Origin: Entomortierella parvispora E1425
Lineage: Eukaryota > Fungi > Mortierellomycota
Assembly (NCBI GenBank): GCA_020891255.1
Contig: BQFW01000002.1
Location: 1-64,000, forward strand
Length of the DNA stretch: 64,000 bases
Direction: 5' to 3'
Under the pieces are notes generated by a model. It saw nothing but the letters and a program-made list of their open reading frames with translations. It was not told the DNA's origin and searched no databases. Position numbers and translations under genes: made by a program. Below, in pieces: positions 49,263 through 63,300 of this stretch; position 1 is the first letter of the stretch, and every line of letters starts with the position of its first letter.

Positions 49263-49901
49263 TTTGCCCATAAATATACCATAAATAAATGCACTGTACT
49301 ATAAAACACACAGTCTGACCACCCAAGGCGCTTTTATAGAGGCATTCTCCTACAAAGGCACATTGCTTTGAACAAGATGTCTACATCCGATGCATGTCTT
49401 GGGCTGTTCAACACAACTGTGTACTCATCATGGACAGAGTAGAACTCAGGGGCGTTCGACCATGATAGGGTCAAAAACAACAGCAGGACCTAAATCAGAG
49501 CAAGGACGCAGAAGGTGGAGACAGTATGGTCATTAAGGTAGCTCAGCTGGAAGATAAGGCATCTCAGCTGTCGACAACATCGTCCAATGCCTTGATCTTG
49601 GCCTTTCACCGTCCCACGTTGTGGCCCCCCACGGATACCCCTGTAGATTTGTTTGCGAGAGGGTATGGCGAGTTTTATATCTTCAAGATGGCCCTCAGAC
49701 CAGATAACCGACTGGGATACCTCACGATGAACGACGTGAACCGCTTCGAGCCCCGTTCCTCACGAATCCGCGTTTCGTTTTTTTTCCACAACAGATAGGG
49801 CGCTTTATTTGTCCAGGAGTTTGTGACTCCTTTTCACGAGCCCCACTTTAGAACGTGCTGGCAAACACGCATATGTTTTTTTTTTTTTTTTTTGGAAATG
49901 T

Positions 49902-51934
49902 TCACTCGGTTCTGACGCGTTTGTCCCTCCCACCCGCGGCGCGTTGTTGCAGAGCCCTTTTGGCTTCTGTCTGGGGGGTCGGCTGCTCGCGCTTGCATTG
50001 TATATAGAGTGGCCTTTCAGATGGCTGGAGATTGTTTAATCCTTCCAGAATGTCGCGTTCTCTCTGATTCAGCTCTTTGACTGGATCGGGTGTGCTTGTC
50101 TTGACGCCAGGTGTCCATTGACAATTGCCCTCCCTATCCGTGGGCTGCAAATAGTCGCTTCGCGTAAAGTATGTCATCTGATGTCGGGCGGCATTGGCAA
50201 TATTGTGGGCCCCGATAACGTCTCTGTGAACCCGAGACCCACAGTGATTACAGGCCAGTCGCCTCATGTTGATGCGAAACAGGAATCGGTGGCAGTGTCT
50301 GCGAGGACACTTTTGGCTCGTGTAATATTCATTCACCAGAACTACGACGTAACCAAGTGACCGTAGCTAGAAAGAGCAATAGCAGTTAGCATTTGCCAGA
50401 TCTTTTTGGGGTAGCAGGAATCGAAGTACATGTCATGTTTGTTCAACTTACAACTCGAATAAGATAGGCAGTAAATGTGCTATCCATGGATTCCAGGCCC
50501 TTGTTGTATCTAGACCCGCCTTGTCCTATTGCCACCAAGACCTTTTCATCCGGTCTTCGTCGGCGCCCGATGCTGCCTCCAAACGACTTCATGATACGGT
50601 CTGCCATGATAGCAAACTCGGCTTCCATCGCCTTCTTCAGATCCCAATGCCTTTTCTTGTATTTCTGGCTCCCGTAAAACGCATCAAGTTTTTCGGCAAC
50701 CTTTTCCATCTCTTGCATATACTTTGTGAAGGATGCTTGTGGCCCATGTAGTGGTGGGAGATGTCTCAGTATATCAGCGATGCTCTCTTCGGTGTCGATT
50801 GGTACGATTGGTACAATATTGGCGGGTGCAGCATTGGTAGGTGCAACATTGGTAGGTGCAACATTGGTAGGTGCCACTGCCACTGGCTGCGATCGGGAGT
50901 GATTTTCCAGACGAAGCTGAGCCTGACGTACAAGTTCTGCTGCTTCCTTCATTTTTACCACAAGAAGAGCTTTGGCGTTCGCAGGGAGCAGTGTTGATAG
51001 CTCTGGATCTGGCGGTCCCGTTGTATGAGTCCTGGGGCTTGTTACTGCTGTTGATAGTGCCAGCGCATTCGAGGCAGAAGCTAGGGCACTTGTGGAAGCC
51101 CCTTCTACTGAAGGCGTCGAAAAGGATTGCAAGTGTGCTGGGGAGATCAAGCCTGGTAACGCCACTGGAGATATTGTTGATGAAGCTATGGTCAATGTTT
51201 CCTCTGCAGCGAGCGGAACTGACCGTAGCATCTTCTTGGACTCCTCCTCAAGCCAAGCGCGATGCTTGAGAATTGGTTGGTATGCAGCTTTCTGACTGAT
51301 GGTAAGGTTGCGAAAGCTCGGGCTGATCGGAGGATCCTGAGCGCTGGGGCCGTTCGCAGACTCTGGTAGCAGCACATGCACACCAACAATAAACCGATCC
51401 CCAGGATCGATGCCAACTACTGTGATGTCGCTTGGGCTGCAGTCGCCGTAGTAGCGTTGCACGTCTCCCTCATTCTTGAAGACATGGCGGATCTCAGATG
51501 GGAAGTAGTCGAGCCCACGGATAGTGGAGGTTGGAGAGACGGGCATCCGATCTGATGGCAGCCGCTTGTATTTGACCATATTCAGTTCTCGAATCTTGAA
51601 GACGTTAACGTGGAGCTTCGTTCCGTTTGTAGTAATGGAGCCTTGCAGGTAATAACCCTTGTCCTCGTATGTATTCGGGTCAAAGTCCTCGCTTCCCAGT
51701 CTTTGAAGGTGAGCCTCGAGCTCCAAAGTGTTGGCATCGATGATTTTCGCCTTCATTCCTCGCTTCTTCCGTTCTCGTCTTGAAAGACTGTTCCGCCCAA
51801 CTCTGCAGATGAACTCTTTAACGATGGCCCCAGGTGATTGCCTTCCCACCCATGATTTGGTGTCTTCCAGAGTAGGCTCCCTAGACAAGCCTGCGCCGCC
51901 AAGGTCGCCTCGAACCATTTCCTGCAGCTTGGAC
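49902..51934 (-). other. Fanzor/TnpB-like RuvC plus zinc-ribbon half of the fusion gene
   Basis: GSITTNG; RuvC-I VVGIDPG; Gly at the canonical RuvC-II position (VAIGQGG); VNEYYTSQKC; CPRRHC...CNHC; RuvC-III HRDVIGAHNI. Confidence 0.9.
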
Positions 51935-54900
51935 TTTAGTGCAATAGGAGTATCGAGGGTGGAGTGGAGACAAGAAGTCAGTTTTATTATATTGCAAGTT
52001 TCTAGCTTTTGTAGGTACACATCGCGTGATGTCACCGTATTCCTGTTACACCTTCCCCTTTTAAAAAATGATACCGTGCTGCTCTTTGAAGGTTGTGACC
52101 AAGTCCATGCAGTTGTCCAAGTTGCTTACTGGGAGCCATTCGTCAGCTTCTCTGCCGTAGCCTTTGAATGACACTAGGAACTGGTGTTGTCTGCGGTAGA
52201 AGCGGTACTTTAAAATTTCGTCCACTTCATACTCCTCTTCGCCGTCAATTACAGTGGGATCCACGGGGGCAGGAGCTCGAATGCCGAGTGACTCCGGGGA
52301 CGGCAAATAGGGTCGAAAGGTATCAACGTGGAAGACGTCATGGATTTTGTAGAATGGTGGCAGCTCGACGCGGAAGGTGACAGGTGAGTGTTGCTCCAAA
52401 AGTGTGAACGGGCCAAGGAATTGAGGTCGAAGTTTATCGGCTGGTCTGATACTGTCGGCAGGGATGGTGATATTGGTGGCACGCAGCAGGACCTTATCGC
52501 CAACCTTGTACTTGTGATCCCGTCGTCGCTTGTTTGCCTGTTGCTCCTGATGATCCTGAGCACGCTGCAGAGCATCCTGGGCCAGGGCAAGGGTGGTCGC
52601 CTGCTCAGTCAGGAAGGTATCGACAGTGGGGACTGAGCTGCTGGGTTTACCGAGGAGAGCGGTGGGGAGACGAGGGTGCTGGCCAGAGTTGAGGAAGAAC
52701 GGCGAGTATCCCGTGGATGCATTGACAGCGTTGTTATAGGCGAATTCCAGTGACGGAAGGAGCTGGTCCCAGTTAGACTGCTTGTTGTCAATAAACGCTC
52801 TCAACATAGTCTTCAGCGTCTTGTTCATAACCTCTGTCTGCCCATCCGTCTGTGGGTGGTAGGCGGTTGACAGTGCAAGTTTGACATCCATTAGCCTGTG
52901 CAACTCTTGCCAGAATCTACTAGTGAATCGAGTGTCGCGGTCCGAGATGATGGATGTTGGTGTGCCATGCAGCTTAAAGATGTTGTCAAAAAACTGGTGG
53001 GCGACGTCGACGGCTGTGGCAGAGGTAGTACTGGGGACGAAGTGAGCTTGCTTGGTCAGCTTGTCGACAAACACTGTGATGGCGTCAAAATTTCTAGCTG
53101 TGGGCGGAAGAGGGCCGATGAAGTCCATGGTGACTACCTCCCAACGTTGCGAAGGAATGGGTAGCGGTTGCAAGAGTCCAGCTGGTCGATCCTGTGAGTC
53201 CTTGTTCCTTTGACACTTCTCGCAGGTTGCTACATACTGCTGGGTATCCTTGGCGATGTGGGGCCAATATACGAAACGGCGCAGGTTGTCGTAAGTCTTT
53301 TGAAAACCAAAGTGTCCAGCAGTGGCAGAGTCGTGAGCGTCGTGCAAGAGAGTGAGGCGGATCGGGGAGTGCCGAGGGATGGCCAGGGTGGTTGCTCCAC
53401 GTCGGGTAAAGTAGAGGAGGTTGTTCTGGAATGAATATCCATTGGCAACCTTCCCATCCAGGCAATCCTTGTAGATGGGTCCAAGTCGAGGATCGTCGTT
53501 GTAGTCCTGGACAAGCTGGTCACGGACGTCCGGGGACAGGGAGACGCTGAGGTTGTATAGCTCAACAGGGTCAGGCTCGCGGTAGTCCGGTCGTCGGGAG
53601 AGAGCGTCTGGGACGATGTTGTCAACTCCTCGCTTGTACTTGAAGTCAAAGTCGTATTCCTGAAGCAACTCCATCCAGCGAGCCTGTCGACGAGTGAGTT
53701 TGGGCTGTGTGGGGGAAGTGGCGGAGGGTGGCGTGGTCGGTGTGGACGCTGAACTTGGTTCCATCGAGGTAGTAGCGCCAAGTGCGGAGCGCATGGATGA
53801 CAGCCAACAGTTCCTGCTCATGGACAGGGTAGTTCCGCTCAGCTGACTGCATTTTTCCTGGAAGTGAATGCGATGGGATGGGTATTCCCTTCCCGGTCAG
53901 TCTGCAGCAGCACTGCACCGATGGCGAAACCGGATGCATCTGTTTCGACAAAGGTGAGAGATCGGGGTCGAAGATGCGGAGGACGGGGGCGGAGCAGATG
54001 GCGCGTTTGAGCTGAAGGAATGCAGATTGTTGTTCGTCGGTCCATTTGAAGGGAGTGTTGTTGGCGAGGAGGGAAGAGAGAGGGAGGGCAATCCCTGCAA
54101 AGCCCGATACGTACTGTTGATAAAATTGCGCAAGCCCCAAAAATTGCTGGACGTCCTTTGTGCTCTTGGGGGTGGGCCAGTCACTGATGGCTTTGCTGAG
54201 CCCGGCCGATGTTTTGATCCCGTCCTTCGTGATGGTGTGGCCCAAAAATTCAGTTTCGTCTTGCATGAAGGAGCACTTGCTCAATTTCGCGTACAGACCG
54301 TTCTTGCGGAGGAGAGCCAGGACGCTTCGGAGATGCTGCAGGTGTTCTTTCTTTGTCTTGGAGTAGATCAACAGATCGTCGAGATACACGACAACCCATT
54401 TGTCCAAGACTGGATCGAGCACTCGCAACATCATATTGGAGAACGAAGCAGGAGCGTTAGTAAGGCCAAAGGGAACAACATTGAACTCAAAGTGACCATA
54501 GCGACAACGGAAGGCAGTCTTGTGTGTGTGTGGTTCAAAGATACGCTGCTGATGATAACCGGATAACAAGTCCAACTTGGAGTAATAGCGTGCTCCACGG
54601 AAGCGGTCAAGAAGCTCGTCGATACGGGGCAACGGGTGTCTGTTCTTCCTGGTGATCTTGTTGAGGCCACGGTAGTCGACGCACATTCGGAGTGTGCCGT
54701 CCTTCTTCCGCACAAAGAGCACGGGGGCGCCATAGGGAGAGGTACTGGGTTTGATAAAACCTGCTGCTAGCAATTGGTCCAGTTGTTTGCGAAGTTCGTC
54801 AAGCTCGGCGATTGAAAGTCTAATGACAGGGCGGAAGGGTGGGTCGGCTGTCGGGTCGGTCTCGATCTTCATAGCATCACCACGGTCTGGGGGCAGGCCG

Positions 54901-57900
54901 TCCGGGAGTTTCTCCGGAAAGACATCAGCGAACTCTTCCATGACAATGGACCGCACCTCTGGGGGTCATATCGGGAATTGTACGCGGTTGGTCAGTTTCT
55001 TCAGAGGGCTCTGGGGTGTTGCGAATAAGGGCCAGGAACACCTCCGAGCCGGGCAGGGTTGCCATGGAATGAAAGTGCATGTGTGTGAGGAGGAGTCCTT
55101 TGGTGCGGCTTTGGATGTGATCGGCCTTGAAGCCGCGGCAGCTCCATTTGACATCGATTCCATTGTGAGTGAAATGAAGATCGTTGGTGCGCCAATTGAT
55201 GCAAGGGTTAACTTTGGTGAGCCAGGGTTTGCCAAGGATGAGGTCGTATTTGTTGAGAGGATAGAGAATAGGGTTGAGCGAATCGGAGTAGTCGCTGCGG
55301 TTGAGGGTGATGGGGACGGTGTGTGATGTGAGGGAGGAAGAGCCATTGGGGAGGAGGATGGGGATGGGCAAGCATTCAGTGCGGAGGAGCTGGTGTCGCT
55401 TTTGAAAAGACGAACTGATAATATTACCTTCTGCACCACCATCAATCAGGATTCTGGCAGCGTGGCCATTGACAGAACCGATGAAAGTGAGCAGTTGGCT
55501 CTCTGCCTTTTGGACAGTGAATTCGTGTAGGCGAATCGCACGACGCTTCAACTTCTTCAACTGACTTTTTGGACAGAGGTACACTAGGTGCCGGCGGTAC
55601 AGCGAGAGGGTCCGGTTCATCTGTATCGGAGGATCTAGGTAGAGGAGCGGACAGGGCAACTGGAGCGGGCGAGGCAACAGGTTTTTTGGTTTGGTTTTGG
55701 TTTCGGTCCGATAGAACAACCAGAGCATCGTGGATGTGAGTTCGCTTGTCATGATTGGAGTCATGTTTCTGAGGTGTAGAATCAAGTGAAGTTTTATTTG
55801 AGGTACTTAGCTCAGGGTTGTTGGCTACAGTTTCGACAACTGGGGTCCGGACCGACCCTAGTTGCCGGAGGCTTTTCCCGAATCAGGGGATTCACCCGCG
55901 GTTACTTGATTAATTCCTCGGCTGCCGTTGCCGTACTTAGGGCAATTGGGACTGATGTGACCCAATTCGCGGCAGCGGAAGCAGCCACCGTTACGTACAA
56001 GGTACTCTCGGTCGGCGGCGGTCAGGGGTGCGGGGCGATCTCGAGAAGGGTTGTTAGTACCGTTGGTGGGGCGGTTCTGTAAGGAGCGGTGAAGGGTGCC
56101 GAGTTGCTTGTGGATATTGTTGAGTTGGATATGAATATTGTCCACTTCCATTGCGTTGGGGTCGGTGATACCAGCAGAGGATCCCGAGGCAGCCAGTGCT
56201 TTGGCACCGAGTGATGGGTCTTCAGTGTGGAAGATACGACCGAACTCCTCCGCGGCCTTAAAGAGTCTGGGCAGATCTATGGTGTCGTTGCCTGCATTAA
56301 CAATGGCCACTTCCAGCATCTGGCGAAGCTGAGTAGGTGCACCACTGAGAAAGGCAGTGCGGATAGTATCGTTGAGAACTGCGTTGTCGGCGTAGTAAGA
56401 CTGGAGGAGTAGGTGGTATTCACGGGCTTTGGTAATATAGGCCATGACGTTGGAGATGTTCAGTGGCAGTGTCATTTTCATTTGCATTGTGAGGGCGAGA
56501 ATGTGCTCCTTAAACTTCGCAGGGCTGAACTCGGCGGCAAGGAGCTCGCTGAAATCCGGGAATGAGGTGTCGGATGGCTTGTTTAAGAGTGCCCACCAGC
56601 CGATAACCTCATCGCCGGCAAAGGCAAGGGTAACCCCGACCTTGCGAGATTCGGCAATTCCAGCGCCATCGAAGAAAAAGGTCATGCGTTTCAGAAAACC
56701 GAGAACAGAGAATCCGTCGCGCTTGCCGTTGAACGGTGTTGGATGAGGGAATTTGAATGACGGTGTCGCGGAGTCCATGTTGGGTGAATTGTCGAGGGAG
56801 AGTTGATCGAAGAGGGATACGAGGGGGTCCAGGGTGTGAGTGTGTCGGAGGGTCAGTGGGTCAGTGAGGTCAGTGGATCGAAAACCTTTGCTACCATGCA
56901 ATAGGAGTATCGAGGGTGGAGTGGAGACAAGAAGTCAGTTTTATTATATTGCAAGTTTCTAGCTTTTGTAGGTACACATCGCGTGATGTCACCGTATTCC
57001 TGTTACATTTAGGTCAGCATGATACCAGAACAACTGTGCAAGCTGGTGGTCGGTCCATGTGATGTGAGGGTCGCTCAAATGGGTGAGAGGGAAGAGCACG
57101 TGGGTCTTGCCGACCACGGTGTTTAATCTCCAAAAGTTCTCGATCGCGGACTCATTTTCACGAATTGAATGATCCTCTCCGTGGATGTGAGCGCCGTCCT
57201 CTTCGAGCTGCGTACGATGAAAACAAAAGAACGGATTGTTATTAAACACGCGCTGATAAAATAATCCAGCTCTGCAGCGCGATATCAACATACCTTTTCT
57301 TTGATAGCAAGACTCGTATTGATATAGTGGCGTTGGATCTGGCCCTGAACGGTCCTTAACCAGGGTTCAACCAAAACAGTGGCAGAATAGGGGCAGCTTT
57401 CACTCTGATAAGGAAAACCTCTGTCCTTGATTTCATAAACGCGCAGTCGCTCTCGAAAGGCTCTGAGGGCTTCTGTTCCAGGATTTCCTGATATGAGAAA
57501 CCGGGCAAAGCAGGCCAGAAAGTTGCATTGTTGAGAATTGTTGACTTTCTTGCGCTTTTTTGGCCTGCTTCCGCTGCTCGCACTGACACTGCTGACGTCA
57601 GGACTGGTGCCTTCAGAACCAGGAATCCTTGGGCAAATAAGATCCAAGAAGATTCTGTCCTTATTGTCAACTACCGGCTGCTCTAGGACCGCATCAATGT
57701 AGCGTCCAAGTATCCGCTCAGTTTGTCTCCTGGCTGCTGTACTCACTTTCGCGGCCAGGGCAAGGCAATCGAAGACTGTTTGGCCATAGTTGCCCTGCTT
57801 ACAAGCCTGAAGAATGTTTGCCTTTAGACATCCGACTTTAGCTGTAACAAACGGATGATGACGACGCAGGTCTCTCTGCATTTGCTCTCTGGGATGAACC

Positions 57901-59473
57901 CTGCGCTTAGTTCCATCAGCTGCTGCGTTATCAACCATAGTGTTGTCCTCCTGAGCGCAACTACTTTCGTCGTTTTCCACCTCATCCTCGTCCTCATCCT
58001 CATCCTCCTTGCTGCTCTCTTCCTCTCGGGCAGGTTTTTGGTACGACTTCCAGTAATATTGTTCAGCCTCCAGTGCTGGTCCATGGTCTTTGGCCTGTCG
58101 TTCATGATACGAGTAGCGTGGTTTGATGTGTTTGTTTTTCGCGAGACTGACATCTGCCGCTGCGGGTCGATCGATTGTTCTGAATGGGTTGAAAGTCTGC
58201 TTTGAACCATGCCTCTTCGATGAAGGATAAAGTGACGAGCTATGACAAAGGTCATGACAGGTGTGAGTATCAGCGAAAAAGGTACAGGAGTATAGTATGC
58301 CAAAGGAGGATGCAAAGAGAAGGATCGGGAACTTACATTGCTTGTTCTTCTCCAGACAGCCTGGCGTCACGGCGCCTCTTTTCAAGACCGTCCCTAATTT
58401 CCTCGAGGTCTTTACAGACACTGACCCATGTAAAGGGCAGCAGGGTATCCGTTGGCGCTTGCACCGCCGTCTGCACCTTGTCCACAAAGACGCGTCTTGA
58501 ACCGGCAAACATTTGGGGATCGATGTTCTTGGCCGCCAAAAGACGATGGGAAAGGAACCGTTCAACCATCTGCTCAACCCCAATGTACTCAGACGCGTCT
58601 GAAAACGAACAGATAACGATGATCGTTAGTTGGTACTCACAATACATAGAAACAGAAATAGGAGTTTATATTACCTGCATCGCCAGAGTCAAGCTGCTTA
58701 ATAACATCAAGGGTCTTGACTGACCCGAATCCCTCAACGTTCTTGTTATAGTCGTTTTTGCTCACGATCGCAAAAGTTGTGAGCTGGACTCGGCTTAGAT
58801 CCAGCGAGGACATCACTTTCTCAACCGCACTCACAAGAAAGCGATCTTTGGTTATAGGGACAACCACGGTGTGAATAGTGTCGTAGGCGAACATGTCGCT
58901 GTCCCGAGACACAACAACATCGTGCGTTTGGCAGTCGGACGCGATTTCAGGATCTGCCTCAAAGCTACACACCCTGGCGTCGAATCCCTGCTGAATGAGA
59001 AACTGGACAAGATTGCTCTTGATCTCTGCGGGGAAATAGTAGGCGCTTGATAATAGGCGATGGGCCTTGTTGAACAAGCCTTTCGAGATGCGTTTGTCGT
59101 GGAGAGCTCTTTGTTGTATATCCTCCACAGTTGCTTTGGCTGCAATCAGCGACTTTTGCTGTTCTTGATGTCGAGACTTTGCCGTTGCCTGCTTTTCTTC
59201 GCAGGGCTTTCCATCAAAATAGAGAACGACGCTACTCTTGGGGACTCCACTTGTCTGTAAGAAATGGTTGATCAAAGCCAGCACTTTCTGGTGACCGATC
59301 TCCCATTTTTTCGTCGTATGATAACCGTAGTATGACCGAAGTTGACCAAAATACGTCGCCTGCATGTCGATCCTAATTTTTGTTCCTTCTGTGCACAGTT
59401 GATCGAGCGAAAGCACCAGATCTGGACGAAAGTTGACAGCGTCGAGTCTCTGTCGTAGAGCGGGCCACCCCAT
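49902..59473 (-). CDS. PIN(XPG/FEN1-like)-Fanzor/TnpB fusion nuclease, 5 exons, 1384 aa when reconstructed; this allele is interrupted by a Ty3/Gypsy insertion
   Basis: Exons 59473-58675, 58598-58337, 58239-57294, 57207-57008 joined to 51934-50452, and 50366-49902 have GT-AG boundaries and total 4155 nt. Removing the retroelement and one TSD copy gives ...FWYHADLKSKLQEMVRG... in frame. Confidence 0.88.
51940..52050 (-). repeat. 3' LTR (111 bp)
   Basis: Base-for-base identical to 56897-57007; preceded on the minus strand by the PPT. Confidence 0.97.
52051..52062 (-). other. Polypurine tract AAAAGGGGAAGG
   Basis: Lies immediately 5' of the 3' LTR on the element's sense strand. Confidence 0.9.
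52061..55879 (-). CDS. pol: Pol polyprotein (protease, RT, RNase H, integrase, chromodomain), broken by five 1-nt frameshifts in this assembly
   Basis: LIDGGAEGN (PR); YLDDLLIYS (RT); ETDASGFAIG and EQELLAV (RH); H...H...C..C and TMDFIGPLP (IN); GPF module; EYEVDEIL...FLVSFKGYG..ADEWLP (chromodomain). Confidence 0.95.
55858..56778 (-). CDS. gag: Gag with a CCHC zinc knuckle
   Basis: P.PFNGKRD motif and CFRCRELGHISPNC; TAG at 55860-55858. Confidence 0.92.
   Translation of the reverse strand: MDSATPSFKFPHPTPFNGKRDGFSVLGFLKRMTFFFDGAGIAESRKVGVTLAFAGDEVIGWWALLNKPSDTSFPDFSELLAAEFSPAKFKEHILALTMQMKMTLPLNISNVMAYITKAREYHLLLQSYYADNAVLNDTIRTAFLSGAPTQLRQMLEVAIVNAGNDTIDLPRLFKAAEEFGRIFHTEDPSLGAKALAASGSSAGITDPNAMEVDNIHIQLNNIHKQLGTLHRSLQNRPTNGTNNPSRDRPAPLTAADREYLVRNGGCFRCRELGHISPNCPKYGNGSRGINQVTAGESPDSGKASGN
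56866..56896 (-). other. Primer-binding site complementary to tRNA-iMet, with extended T-arm complementarity
   Basis: TGGTAGCAAAGG directly follows the 5' LTR, then TTTCGATCCACTGACCTC. Confidence 0.85.
56897..57007 (-). repeat. 5' LTR (111 bp)
   Basis: Identical to 51940-52050; contains AATATAATAAA on the sense strand. Confidence 0.97.
58675..59473 (-). other. XPG/FEN1/Exo1-type PIN 5' nuclease domain with H3TH motif (exon 1 of the fusion gene)
   Basis: RIDMQ, LYFDG..CEEKQATAKSR, FEAD, VVSRDSD and NDYNKNVEGFG acidic motifs in the expected order. Confidence 0.9.
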
Positions 59474-60342
59474 GTTGAAGTAAAAGGAAGAAACTGCAAG
59501 GAACAGAAATGCGCCCCAGGAGGAGGATCAGCAGTGAGAGTATGTGGATAGTGTCAAAGTAAAAAGAGTAGGACAAATGGAGTGGTTTGATATGAAGTAG
59601 GAGTATTCACGCTTGGCAGAGGTTTACTGGCAGTGAACTTGAAGAGAGAAAGAGAGAATAAAGGTCAAGAGGAGAGAAAGAAAGAGAGAAAGCTTGATGA
59701 AAACAACAGCTTGACAGCTTCATAGAATCAGTAAAGGCGACCAGGCGCACCACAGATTCAAAAGCTTTTCCTGTGTGCCATCACTTCACGACCGCATCTT
59801 GATGGCTGCCCCGAGTTACACTTTTGAAATTTGAATATGATGGATACACAGGTTGCAGACACTGCTTGTACGGCACTATTTATTTTGGACCTTAGGCAAC
59901 AACAGCAGGTCCCTGGGAACAACGACAACAGATTCATTGCACCACTATTCTTTGTCAATGTGGGCTGGCAGGGATATAATACAAAAAAACCAACAACTCT
60001 GGACCAGGGCTGGTTGTTATTTTCCGTGGACAACCAGCTCTCCAGTCCAATTGCACCGGCGCCTCATTTGGGCGATCGTGTTGTCCTGGTGGCGGTAGAC
60101 GCAGCTCTGGCTACTCTTTTACTGTTTCCCCCCTTTATCCCGGATGGTGTTTACCAACATGTGAGATATGAAGTTGGCGATGGTGCTGGTGCCTCTCAGT
60201 CTTTCAAACGCCGGCAGATGCTCAGACCACGTGATGTTATGCTGGGCATGTTTGCCACCAATTCGTTCTTTCTGACCGAGGTCGAGGGTCAAGGCATCCA
60301 TCCATCCATTTGCTCAACGATCCTTCCTCCCTCCCTCTCCTC

Positions 60343-63300
60343 ATGGCTGCAGACAAGAGAGCGCCCGTAAAGGCGCAGTCGACACTCTTGAGCTTTTTCA
60401 AACCCGCTGTAGCCACACCGACTACGCAGGATTCAAAAGCCACGCCTCCATCCAAAGACAAGAATGTCGCGCCTCTTTCTGAATCCGAGCCCACGGTCAA
60501 GGCACCCACACCCGGCAATTCAAAGTCTCCGACCTCTTCTCGGACCACAGGAAACCGCGCCGAGAAGGAAACTTTAAGCAAAACCAAAAGTCGGGATGAG
60601 GACGATGAATCTGAAGACGAACAGGATGCAATGGAAGAAACCAGGTCCAAAGACTCTTCTTCGACATTGCCCAAGGCTGCAGCCAAGGGCATGCTGTCCA
60701 GGCTCCAATACGAGAGTGAAAGCACCGAGTCCAGTACACCAGACAACAGCGGCGACACTCCCACGGCCCAAAAGCCGACTGCCAGCAACGGCAGCAGCAG
60801 CCTGAGTAGACAGGAAGCGTTTCGACAAAAGATCAGACAATCAGGCGCGTCGTCCCAAGCGACTCCCTCGCACGCCGACCCTACAACTCCTACCACGAAA
60901 CGGCGGCGACTCATTGTTTCTGAGGATGAAGATGAGGATGATGATGAGTACAAAGAGTCTGCTCAGCCAGTTGTCAAGAGAGCAGCTACCACGCCCACTC
61001 GCCCCATTCAGACCAAAGGCGGATCCAGTCGATCATCAAAGGCAAAGAGCATATATACACCCTTGGAGCAACAATACCTAGAGATCAAGGAACAATACCC
61101 GGATGCTATTCTTTGTATCGAAGTTGGATACAAGTTCCGATTCTTTGGCAACGATGCCGAGGTAAGTGTCTACATCAGCCATTCGGTTCAATCGTTTGAG
61201 AAATTAAAAAAAACCAGATTATTAATGGATCTCTCCGTTCTTAGATTGCTTCCAAGGAACTAAGCATCATGCACTTTATGGACCACAACTTCTTCACAGC
61301 CAGTATTCCAGTACATCGTCTCGATGTGCATGTACGAAGGTGAGTGTTCCTTAATCAATCTTTTGTTTGGATGTAATTTACTCGATTTCATGGCGACTGA
61401 CAAGGAGCGTTCTACCCTCCAATAGATTGGTTCATTCTGGATACAAAGTGGGCGTAGTTCGCCAAATCGAAACAGCAGCTCTAAAGTCGGCAGGCGATAA
61501 CAAGAGTGCACCATTCACCCGCAAACTCACCAATCTTTATACCAAGGCCACCTTTATTGAGAGTCTTGACCGCGACGAGGACCAGTTTGGCGGACATGAG
61601 CCTTCATCGCAATATATCATGAGCATCAGCGAGCAACCCCAGGGCGGATCTGGAGCGGACGAAAGAGTACTGGTCGCCATCATGGCAGTCCAGCCGGCGA
61701 CAGGCGATATCATTTACGACGAATTTATAGACGGACACTTTCGAAATGAGCTCGAGACTCGGCTTTTGCACATTCAGCCGACAGAACTCATTGTTCCAAT
61801 GGAGCCTATGAGCAAAGCGACAGAGAAGATTATCAAGCACCTGTCGTCTTCACGCCGTACGGCAGCTGTAACGAGTAGCCCGGATGATGTCCGCATTGAG
61901 CGTACCAATGGATTTCTCAAGTACGATAAGGCCTTCACGCTCGTCTCTGAATTTTACGCTGAGGGGGTCAAGGAGGAACAGCTGGCGTCAGGATCCAGCG
62001 GGAGCAAGACCGGTAGCAACAAAAGCCAGGCCGAGGTTCTTCTCACCACTGTTTTGGGTCTTTCAAAAAACTTAATCGTGGTCCTCGCAGCCATGATTTC
62101 TCATCTCTCAGATTTTGGACTGGCGCCAGTTTTCCGGCTCTCAAAGTACTTTGAGTGCTTCACCTCGCGATCACACATGTTGTTGAATGGAAACACGATC
62201 GCCAACCTTGAGATCTATAGGAACCAGACTGACTGGTCGAGTCGAGGCTCCTTGTTCTCGATTTTGGACCATACCGTGACTGGATTTGGGAAACGGCTCC
62301 TGAAAAAGTGGGTTGGAAAACCATTGGTGGACCGGATAGCATTGCAGGAGAGGATCGATGCAGTCGAAGAAATTTTGTCCACAAAGGGGACAAACATCCA
62401 TCTGGAAAATACCCGGAGCATGCTGAAAGGATTGATGGATCTTGAAAAGGGTGTTTGTCGCGTGCACTACGGAAAGGTAGGCCCAACTTTGACATGACCG
62501 ACATTGGATTCTCTCGCATCTGTGGCTAATATGGCGATTTTTTTTTCTGGGCAAAAAATAGTCGACACCCAAGGAGTTCTTGACCATCCTCAAGGCGTTT
62601 ACTCAAGTGGCCAAAGTGACGGAGCGGGCTGATCGGACAGAGCAGGATCAAGACTATGGACTGTCGAGTCCTATCTTGAGAAGACTTGTAGGATCTATGA
62701 GCAAGGCCAAAGAGGATACCGAGTACTTTGTTCAGTGTTTGGATGACAATGCAGCATTCAAGAACGACAAGTTGCAAATGTTCCGAACCGAGACCCTCGC
62801 TGAAAAATGGCCTGAAGTTTTGGAGCACAAGGATGTAAGTTTTCTGAATTTTGTCCGCTGATGATGTGGGTTATATCTCTGTTTTTCATTCTTGCGGTTT
62901 GAACATGGTTTTAATCCAAAGATTTGTCATACTTCCTGGACTTTAGAACATTGTGCAAACAGATGCTGAGCTACAAGAACATTTGATAGAGATAAGAAAG
63001 ACCTTACGGGAACCTCGACTTGAGTTTACTTCAGTCTCTGGAATTGATTATCTCGTGGAGGTCAAGAACAAGGATGTGGCCAAGATTCCCAAAGCTTGGA
63101 TCAAGATCAGCGGGTAAGGAATAGTTCTCACGGCAAGGCAACACCGGGGTCCTGACTCCAATATTGACACAAAAGCTGAAAAAAAAAAATGACGATAGGA
63201 CGAAGCAGGTATCCCGCTTCCACACTCCGGAGACCACTCGACTTGTCAACGAGAAAGCGCAACACCAGGAAAGACTCGTGCTGTCCTGTGAGCAAGCCTT

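Follow-up and report, generated by a model that had tools for sequence, protein, structure and literature searches.

A FEN1/EXO1-type nuclease and a Fanzor are joined in one spliced gene within a transposon of Entomortierella parvispora, and the sequence predicts that this gene (PIN-Fanzor) encodes a single chain of 1,384 aa. It lies on the minus strand of the window, i.e. the whole stretch of 64,000 nucleotides analysed here, and is interrupted by a Ty3/Gypsy element of 5,068 bp. The original prediction had not recognised such a fusion as a characterised system, and no flap-nuclease-Fanzor fusion was found described in the searched literature.

Structure of the interrupted gene

The gene and the element nested in it comprise the following features, in the direction of transcription of the gene:

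58675..59473, minus strand: exon 1, FEN1/EXO1/XPG-class PIN-like domain, about aa 1-266, by alignment, PDB profile, and AF2 with Foldseek
58599..58674, minus strand: intron 1, 76 nt, GTAATA...AG
58337..58598, minus strand: exon 2, 262 nt, where the linker begins
58240..58336, minus strand: intron 2, 97 nt, GTAAGT...AG
57294..58239, minus strand: exon 3, 946 nt; an acidic tract and the NLS RPKKRKKV (57543-57566) lie in this conserved part of the linker
57208..57293, minus strand: intron 3, 86 nt, GTATGT...AG
57008..57207, minus strand: exon 4, upstream part, in which the Fanzor core begins (SAIENFW at 57130-57150), with a CTAAA copy of the target-site duplication (TSD) at its end (57008-57012)
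51940..57007, minus strand: nested Ty3/Gypsy chromovirus-type LTR retrotransposon, 5,068 bp, with LTRs at 56897-57007 and 51940-52050
50452..51939, minus strand: exon 4, downstream part; the second CTAAA copy comes first (51935-51939), then REC/WED-like regions and RuvC-I D912 (51406-51408)
50367..50451, minus strand: intron 4, 85 nt, GTAAGT...AG
49902..50366, minus strand: exon 5, with the C4 zinc ribbon/TNB (Pfam PF07282) set between RuvC-II E1243 (NEYYTS) and RuvC-III D1279 (HRD), then a basic tail and the stop codon

Taking out the retrotransposon together with one copy of its 5-bp TSD leaves five exons that sum to 4,155 nt and encode 1,384 aa without an internal stop, the same totals as had been predicted earlier from five GT-AG exons. 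The excision had been predicted to join ...CAT GCT GAC CTA AA in frame to G TCC AAG CTG CAG, and this is borne out by a paralogue on contig C11 that lacks the insertion: there LFWYHADLKSRLQEMV spans the junction point, and in an uninterrupted paralogue the junction reads FWYHADLKSRLQEMV. Both this paralogue and an intact copy on contig C3 (1,377 aa) are uninterrupted versions of the kind for which a check of the E. parvispora genome had been proposed.

The inserted element has LTRs that end in TG...CA, a 5-bp TSD and the order gag-PR-RT-RNase H-INT-chromodomain characteristic of Ty3/Gypsy elements, with recognisable gag zf-CCHC, RVP_2, RVT_1, RNase H, integrase and chromodomain regions. On the minus strand it opens with TGTAACAGG and closes with CTATTGCA; a PBS-like sequence, TGGTAGCAAAGG, stands just after the 5' LTR and a purine tract just before the 3' LTR. 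The LTRs are direct repeats of 111 nt each that are 100% identical, and the insertion into exon 4 is young. Apart from this split, the reading frame of the window copy is intact. The copy is dead, since the retrotransposon splits the gene and the 5' end of the host element is missing; loss of the 5' terminal inverted repeat (TIR) was followed, or preceded, by the splitting of exon 4.

The two nuclease domains and their linker

Residues from about 1 to 266 are predicted to form a 5' nuclease of the FEN1/EXO1/XPG class with a complete active site (D36, D87, E93-K94, R101, E172-A-D174, D191-S-D193 and D241). An alignment of 10 sequences with about 30% identity shows little or no variation at the carboxylates D36, D87, E172, D174, D191, D193 and D241, and none at the gateway residues K94 and R101. 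A profile of this alignment searched against the PDB recovers solely chains of Rad2/XPG, FEN1 and EXO1, with E-values down to 3.5e-10, and the AF2 model of the domain (pLDDT 82.7) retrieves human EXO1 as its best Foldseek match at 1e-8, EXO1-DNA complexes being nearest; profile and fold thus agree with the XPG/FEN1/Exo1 PIN motifs originally noted at the N-terminus. The model has a long helical arch, with helices at 92-124 and 131-143, and the arch-bearing EXO1 and FEN1 rank ahead of GEN1 and XPG. NDYNKNVEGFGSVKTL aligns to the H2TH/H3TH motif of FEN-1, in a region where the model is of low confidence (pLDDT < 50 at residues 238-254). The domain has in common with EXO1, FEN1 and XPG (Rad2) the seven carboxylates, the gateway Lys/Arg, a candidate H3TH-like motif and, as far as the model goes, the helical arch, and its predicted fold is nearest to human EXO1 bound to 5'-recessed DNA. 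However, it is only about 15% identical to these enzymes, and the window piece alone scores 18.5 bits against Pfam XPG_I, under the cut-off of 24.9, with its relatives P0017 and P0005 above it. In contrast to EXO1, FEN1 and XPG, moreover, it is without their C-terminal partner-binding regions, is fused to a predicted RNA-guided nuclease and is borne on a transposon.

Residues from about 685 to 1384 are assigned by their motifs to Fanzor1: the RuvC triad is rearranged, and there is a C4 zinc ribbon. They are probably an RNA-guided DNA cutter. The residues D912 (GIDPG), E1243 (NEYYTS), CPRRHC...CNHC and D1279 (HRD) are conserved across the Fanzor alignment. At the canonical RuvC-II position Gly stands in place of Glu (GGSIG...VAIGQG), with a relocated Glu, E1243, about 40 residues downstream; such a relocated Glu beside an inert canonical position is a described Fanzor pattern (PMC10530073). 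Pfam PF07282 matches both the window piece (4.3e-10, 40 bits) and the paralogue P0001 (4.5e-13, 49.6 bits) above its cut-off of 26.3, and the Fanzor half is also matched in a PDB profile search. Foldseek ranks SpuFz1 (2.7e-6), PpFz1 and GtFz1 best, followed by CasPhi, Fz2, Cas12f and TnpB, for a model of low confidence (pLDDT 58, with TM about 0.3 in the matches). The TnpB/Fanzor RuvC and zinc-ribbon motifs predicted for the C-terminus are thus recovered by Pfam, PDB profile and predicted fold alike, and the failure to match TnpB/Fanzor by profile or structure that was to count against them did not occur. With SpuFz1, GtFz1 and PpFz1 (PMC10432273, PMC11423790), its best structural matches, PIN-Fanzor shares a rearranged RuvC, a zinc-ribbon TNB, an NLS, introns and residence in transposons; PpFz1 also has an insertion within RuvC. 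The downstream part of exon 4 carries a low-complexity insert of APTNV repeats. Whereas Fz1 proteins are mostly of 600-700 aa (PMC11423790), PIN-Fanzor has 1,384 aa, of which about 685 additional N-terminal residues comprise the second nuclease and the linker.

The two parts are connected by a conserved linker of about 420 aa, which carries the NLS predicted in exon 3 (RPKKRKKV, located at aa 579-586). A domain search with the exon 3 linker returned no known domains. Its exon 2 motif FAGSRRVFVDKVQT is homologous to FSSAVRVFHDMRQT of the Actinomortierella protein P0024.

The host element, its copies and its insertion sites

Three further features of the window concern the element that carries the gene:

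49797..60210, minus strand: non-autonomous TIR DNA transposon, whole copy, retrotransposon included; 3' end intact, about the first 100 nt and the 5' TIR missing
49798..49875, minus strand: last 78 nt of the element, after an A-run and including the 3' TIR, for which divergence was compared among four copies
60228..60233, no strand assigned: CACGTG motif, 17 nt outside the expected 5' end of the element

The window element is homologous to five other copies from about 60205 to 49798, and of its TIRs that at the 3' end (49797-49818) alone survives. Full-length copies are of about 5.4 kb, start with GGGTGTACTTATTTGTCCAGGA and finish with TCCTGGACAAATAAAGCGCCCC, with TIRs of about 22 nt (GGGTGTACTTATTTGTCCAGGA and GGGGCGCTTTATTTGTCCAGGA) and 9-bp TSDs, e.g. 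GCACTTCAT on contig C11, GATTGGAAA on contig C12 and GCCTGCGGT in the sister family L038. PIN-Fanzor is the sole cargo of this non-autonomous element. Of the two fates originally offered for the gene, non-autonomous cargo or domestication, the former stands and the latter does not, because a TIR element with 9-bp TSDs, present in many, often decayed, copies, has the gene as its only cargo. As had been noted for the window, no transposase was found in or beside any PIN-Fanzor copy; the 37 matches to PF10551 (MULE) in the genome all lie elsewhere, none of them near a TIR match. A MuDR/MULE-type assignment is suggested by the TSD length and by the precedent of non-autonomous MuDR-type Fanzor1 elements with 9-bp TSDs in Mucoromycotina (PMC3627910). 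Like PIN-Fanzor, the elements ROr-4 and PBl-3 as well as MCi-4 (Bao & Jurka 2013, PMC3627910) have Fanzor1 as sole cargo, TIRs, 9-bp TSDs and no transposase, and come from early-diverging fungi; however, their N-terminal regions are described as 'highly variable', with no XPG/FEN domain assigned to them and no mention of XPG in that paper, whereas the N-terminus of PIN-Fanzor is a predicted complete 5' nuclease.

At least 33 E. parvispora loci have a PIN part upstream of, and on one strand with, the Fanzor part. The layout is not due to chance, since five more copies of the window family and many diverged loci repeat it. Fused models of 1,000-1,310 aa occur in six other genera of Mortierellaceae, among them Actinomortierella, Linnemannia, Mortierella, Dissophora and Gamsiella. 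In GenBank these proteins go under names such as 'Rad2 nuclease', 'putative transposase' or 'hypothetical protein'. All three segments, PIN, linker and Fanzor, show dN/dS of 0.24-0.30 with an excess of third-position changes. Homologues with PIN and RuvC parts as separate genes were to have spoken against the fusion; instead, we found fused models, a conserved linker and dN/dS < 1. Many copies are frameshifted or truncated, and current activity is uncertain because only one of the five other family copies, that on contig C3, is intact.

Among four copies, the last 78 nt of the element show a pairwise divergence of 0.64%, compared with 4.9% for third codon positions and 1.3-3.5% for introns, a conservation 5-8 times that of silent sites. 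This stretch is a candidate for an omega-RNA scaffold, for a transposase-binding end or for both; neither a significant fold (z -0.21) nor an Rfam match was obtained with the 3' end of the element. Two diverged PIN-Fanzor families have the 5' TIR in common, and the spacing of 17 nt to CACGTG, in a fixed orientation, recurs at 14 TIR-bearing insertions genome-wide. No fixed motif usable as a TAM was found immediately beside the TSD at the insertion sites examined.

Proposed mechanism and alternatives

On balance, we favour the reading that the window holds a dead copy of a TIR element encoding a single-chain 5' nuclease-Fanzor1 that would cut under RNA guidance, resect the break and thereby drive homing or retention of the element. 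An omega RNA from the 3' end of the element would guide the RuvC domain, as in TnpB/Fanzor systems, to cut the insertion site on the copy free of the element. The tethered 5' nuclease would then thread and resect the new 5' ends or flaps, leaving 3' single-stranded tails that would turn repair from end joining to homologous recombination with the chromatid or homologue that carries the element, such that the element is copied back. The mechanism is proposed by analogy, and the conservation of the last 78 nt fits it. T5 exonuclease is a member of the FEN superfamily. Its fusion to Cas12a or Cas12f raises editing activity (10.1101/2020.07.07.191130, PMC12337685), and TnpB, according to PMC10690162, is a homing endonuclease that stimulates recombinational re-copying. 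More tentatively, PIN-Fanzor may be a natural single-chain 'cut-and-resect' enzyme, in which the omega-RNA-guided break is resected in cis and recombinational copying forced, and which is perhaps also involved in targeting integration to a position 17 nt from (T)CACGTG(A) in fixed orientation.

That the locus instead yields two proteins, a PIN-only one with intron 1 kept and a Fanzor-only one from an internal start in the linker, which act independently or as a non-covalent pair, with the fusion an artefact or minor isoform, appears unlikely. Retention of intron 1 does bring the frame to a stop 12 codons on, giving a PIN-only ORF of 278 aa, and the GenBank model of the paralogue P0001 is spliced otherwise than the five-exon model; however, the linker has no in-frame stop, is conserved between families with invariant residues, and lies in a PIN-Fanzor frame with dN/dS of 0.26-0.30, the four introns all have strong donors and preserve the frame, and independent gene models are fused in several genera. 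We give little credence to an action of the PIN domain on RNA, by which it would either mature the omega RNA from an mRNA already spliced and polyadenylated or shorten that RNA at its 5' end. In bacterial TnpB, omega RNA maturation is done by the RuvC domain itself. A nuclear, mRNA-derived guide would require processing, the ORF and the conserved last 78 nt have an A-run between them, and many PIN-like domains are RNases (PMC5499597), but the best sequence and fold matches are to FEN1/EXO1/XPG DNA 5' nucleases, the helical arch and the candidate H3TH-like GFG motif are typical of duplex-DNA binding, and no RNase-type PIN family was matched.

It is likewise improbable that PIN-Fanzor is the element's own mobility machinery, engaged in flap or end processing at excision and integration or in target choice, rather than a homing or retention device. 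The lack of a transposase in or beside any copy and the 5' TIR shared by two diverged families are consistent with such a role, and the fixed distance and orientation relative to CACGTG imply a specific targeting factor. Against it, none of the known Fanzor and TnpB proteins is a transposase, there are earlier examples of non-autonomous MuDR-type Fanzor elements (PMC3627910), and TSDs of 9 bp bear the signature of a DDE transposase that works in trans. Least probable by far is a domesticated host gene or a gene for defence against other mobile elements: purifying selection on the coding frame and the NLS would fit it, but the gene is bounded by TIRs and TSDs and present in multiple copies at unrelated sites, many of them frameshifted or truncated, and the window copy has itself been destroyed by another element.

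The favoured cut-and-resect reading has engineered counterparts in TEXT (T5 exonuclease-FnCas12a, 10.1101/2020.07.07.191130) and exoCasMINI (T5 exonuclease-Cas12f, PMC12337685), both of which likewise tether a 5' nuclease to a TnpB-derived RuvC nuclease. In contrast to these man-made proteins, which were optimised to enlarge deletions or to raise editing rates, PIN-Fanzor is natural, and selection on it has presumably acted on transposon spread. As a natural counterpart of the engineered exonuclease-Cas12 fusions, it could guide tool design by its linker and domain order.

To our knowledge, Fanzors are the sole known RNA-guided DNA nucleases of eukaryotes. What is new here is a natural two-nuclease architecture that has gone unrecognised in the searched literature, though the proteins sit in GenBank. 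The conserved EXO1/FEN1-type fusion points to a step after the cut, in which the break would be processed for recombination and not for end joining, and with it the homing/retention hypothesis can be put to a direct test in a eukaryote.

Gene model and retrotransposon insertion

The PIN-Fanzor gene appears in the ORF listing of the window as a row of minus-strand pieces, which is interrupted by a block of retroelement ORFs:

ORF pieces of the PIN-Fanzor gene
58637-59473, minus strand, ORF piece
57285-58583, minus strand, ORF piece
56989-57291, minus strand, ORF piece
50443-52035, minus strand, ORF piece
49902-50336, minus strand, ORF piece

Joining the frames across four short predicted introns, with strong donors and AG acceptors (76 nt, GTAATA; 97 nt, GTAAGT; 86 nt, GTATGT; 85 nt, GTAAGT), yields a stop-free predicted coding sequence of 4,155 nt and 1,384 aa, i.e. 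the same five exons and the same numbers as in the original prediction. Three of the four predicted junctions are also used in the GenBank model of an E. parvispora paralogue (P0001, GJJ76480.1, 'putative transposase'), which departs from the present model by a weaker exon 2 donor and by leaving out some of exon 3. Because the Actinomortierella protein P0024 conserves the stretches that P0001 lacks, the five-exon model is preferred; omitting them probably serves to avoid the frameshifts of the P0001 copy. GenBank names are inconsistent across these two and the further database proteins P0017 and P0152, comprising 'putative transposase', 'Rad2 nuclease', 'Elongation of fatty acids protein 2' and 'hypothetical protein'.

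The interruption contains a pair of 111-nt direct repeats that are 100% identical (51940-52050 and 56897-57007), reads on the minus strand from TGTAACAGG to CTATTGCA, and has CTAAA on either side (57008-57012 and 51935-51939). Its ORFs encode zf-CCHC, RVP_2, RVT_1, RNase H, integrase and chromodomain modules. The repeats, flanks and domains therefore identify a 5,068-bp Ty3/Gypsy element of the chromovirus type with a 5-bp TSD. In silico excision of this element along with one TSD copy restores the frame as ...HADLKSKLQEMV..., just as had been anticipated, and the paralogue on contig C11 runs without interruption across the junction point (LFWYHADLKSRLQEMV). Despite the identical LTRs, gag, protease, RT/RNase H and integrase are spread over four overlapping minus-strand ORFs in different frames (52061-56901), and many related LTR fragments are dispersed through the genome. 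As a matter of arithmetic only, the insertion could in principle be spliced out (51934-57006, minus strand), using as donor the GT at LTR base 2 and as acceptor the AG formed by the TSD and the next G; the 5,073 nt so removed (3 x 1,691) would keep the frame with one K-to-N change, and an intron of 5 kb would be highly unusual here.

Two nuclease domains and their linkage

Profile searches were needed because single-sequence searches of the PDB were weak (FEN-1 at 1e-3, TnpB at 0.11); the window sequence on its own also lies under the Pfam XPG_I cut-off. Searched against the PDB, a profile of the nuclease-domain alignment (A1) matches chains of Rad2/XPG, FEN1 and EXO1 only, with E-values as low as 3.5e-10. 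The paralogue N-termini carry the XPG-N signature MG(I/L/V)..W/L, and across ten sequences of ~30% identity the equivalents of FEN1 D34, D86, E158, E160, D179, D181, D233, K93 and R100 vary little or not at all, corresponding in A1 to D36, D87, E172, D174, D191, D193, D241, K94 and R101 of the window protein. The AF2 model of the domain (pLDDT 82.7) displays a long helical arch, with human EXO1-DNA complexes as the best fold matches (1e-8, TM 0.65), followed by FEN1 and then by GEN1 and XPG.

In the C-terminal half, PF07282 (Cas12f1-like TNB) is detected above its cut-off, and the Fanzor-part alignment (A2) conserves GIDPG (D912), NEYYTS (E1243), a C4 ribbon and HRD (D1279). Gly stands at the canonical RuvC-II position; a rearranged RuvC site of this kind has been described for Fanzors (PMC10530073). 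A profile search of the PDB recovers LaTranC at 1e-4 and the mimivirus Fanzor2 at 3e-3, while the structure model, which is modest (pLDDT 58), best matches SpuFz1, PpFz1 and GtFz1, and then CasPhi, Fanzor2, Cas12f and TnpB. These searches bear out both the XPG/FEN1/Exo1 PIN motifs proposed for the N-terminus and the Fanzor/TnpB RuvC and zinc-ribbon motifs proposed for the C-terminus.

Weak PIN-like similarity (22-33%) is also present in several multi-copy families of 400-550-aa ORFs with no Fanzor part nearby (homology matches in the same genome, G000, at e.g. C8:1883542, C12:575633, C14:1949122, C7:668457 and C13:2529741). XPG-like nucleases may be a recurrent cargo of other repeats in E. parvispora.

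Whether the PIN and RuvC parts belong to one gene or to two was judged on comparative evidence, namely selection, linker conservation, gene models and genomic layout. In comparisons of the window copy with the other five copies of its family, the nuclease part, linker and Fanzor part all have dN/dS values of 0.24-0.30, and substitutions relative to the C3 copy (L027) number 41/31/84 at codon positions 1/2/3. The linker matches no Pfam domain and nothing in the Atlas, and has invariant residues among proteins of 30-55% identity (full-length alignment A3). Both domains are found in gene models of 1,000-1,310 aa from Actinomortierella ambigua, Linnemannia zychae, Mortierella spp., Dissophora globulifera and Gamsiella multidivaricata. 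In the E. parvispora genome, a layout with both parts on one strand and the nuclease part ~2.5 kb upstream of the Fanzor part is seen at six window-family loci, at 17 loci from families of only 35-41% identity, and in a 7-kb family with at least 10 copies. Homologue searches with the P0024 region or with A3 returned only two to three proteins and are no guide to distribution. The fused models, the conserved linker and the dN/dS below 1 argue, at the sequence level, for a single gene over two separate ones.

Carrier transposons and their insertion sites

Copies of the window family have ~5.4 kb in common, the full-length ones starting with GGGTGTACTTATTTGTCCAGGA and ending with TCCTGGACAAATAAAGCGCCCC; the family has the TIR GGGTGTAYTTATTTG and 9-bp TSDs (GCACTTCAT in the C11 copy and GATTGGAAA in the C12 copy). 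No transposase was found inside the element, in keeping with the original prediction. In its 9-bp TSD and lack of an internal transposase the carrier resembles the MuDR-type non-autonomous Fanzor1 elements reported by Bao & Jurka from Rhizopus, Phycomyces and Mucor (PMC3627910). In the window copy the 3' TIR survives (49797-49818) but ~100 nt are absent from the start, the 5' TIR among them; a 9-bp TSD is not claimed for this copy, as only five of nine bases agree (ATCTGCCGG vs ATCTGTTGT). Of the five other copies recovered by the genome search proposed for uninterrupted ones, only that on C3 is intact (1,377 aa), those on C11 and C12 being frameshifted and those on C4 and C15 decayed. The truncated 5' end of the window element is ~100 bp upstream of a neighbouring ORF (60310-61263, plus strand) for a MutS domain I protein of the MSH-type mismatch-repair class.

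In a six-copy alignment of the window family, the introns and 5' leader differ less (1.3-3.5%) than third codon positions (4.9%); therefore, the non-coding parts of the element seem to be constrained, or sequence is exchanged between copies. The element's final 78 nt show 5-8 times the conservation of silent sites, and no Rfam family or significant fold was found for the 3' end.

The 7-kb family (L038:523-7513 on contig C7, L039, L040) likewise shows a 9-bp TSD (GCCTGCGGT at L038), and its 5' TIR (GGGTGTACTTATTTGCCCAGGA) is almost identical to that of the window family; therefore, the two distant families are apparently mobilised by the same machinery. This family was ruled out as an autonomous, transposase-carrying partner: its cargo is a further PIN-Fanzor protein, much more distant in sequence (identity 23-26%) and without a Pfam match. 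Examination of the ends of the L030 family revealed no clear TIRs.

At 14 sites carrying the 5' TIR, from two PIN-Fanzor families, CACGTG occurs exactly 17 nt outside the TIR, mostly in the form TCACGTGA, which we take to be a bHLH/Cbf1-like site. The intervening 17 nt are unlike at each site, the last nine being the TSD where both flanks were read, and the 5' end of the element is always towards CACGTG. The window position that matches this spacing is:

60228-60233, CACGTG

The fixed spacing and facing imply site- and orientation-specific integration, and suggest that PIN-Fanzor elements are directed to such sites via some factor. CACGTG was rejected as a conventional TAM, since it is 8 nt off the TSD and the expected target.

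Precedents and proposed function

Most Fz1 proteins are reported to be 600-700 aa long (PMC11423790). In the searched literature, Fanzor is nowhere combined with XPG, FEN1, PIN-like or Mortierella; such a nuclease domain goes unmentioned in the main Fanzor papers, as does TnpB in the classification of PIN-like domains (PMC5499597). Within that literature the fusion is, as originally supposed, an uncharacterised system.

The PIN-Fanzor architecture is established by the above comparisons, and its function we infer by analogy to TnpB homing (PMC10690162). Engineers have fused T5 exonuclease to Cas12a or Cas12f and obtained higher editing (10.1101/2020.07.07.191130, PMC12337685). Competing readings are that the two domains act in separate isoforms, a PIN-only form of which may arise by retention of intron 1, that the protein has a role in RNA processing or in transposition itself, or that it has been domesticated.

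Arch-bearing EXO1/FEN1-type nucleases act on free 5' ends and flaps. For a role in homing, we propose that the Fanzor part, guided by an omega RNA derived from the element's 3' end, would cut element-free target sites; the tethered EXO1/FEN1-type nuclease would then start 5' resection at the cut, so that homologous recombination would be favoured and would copy the element back.
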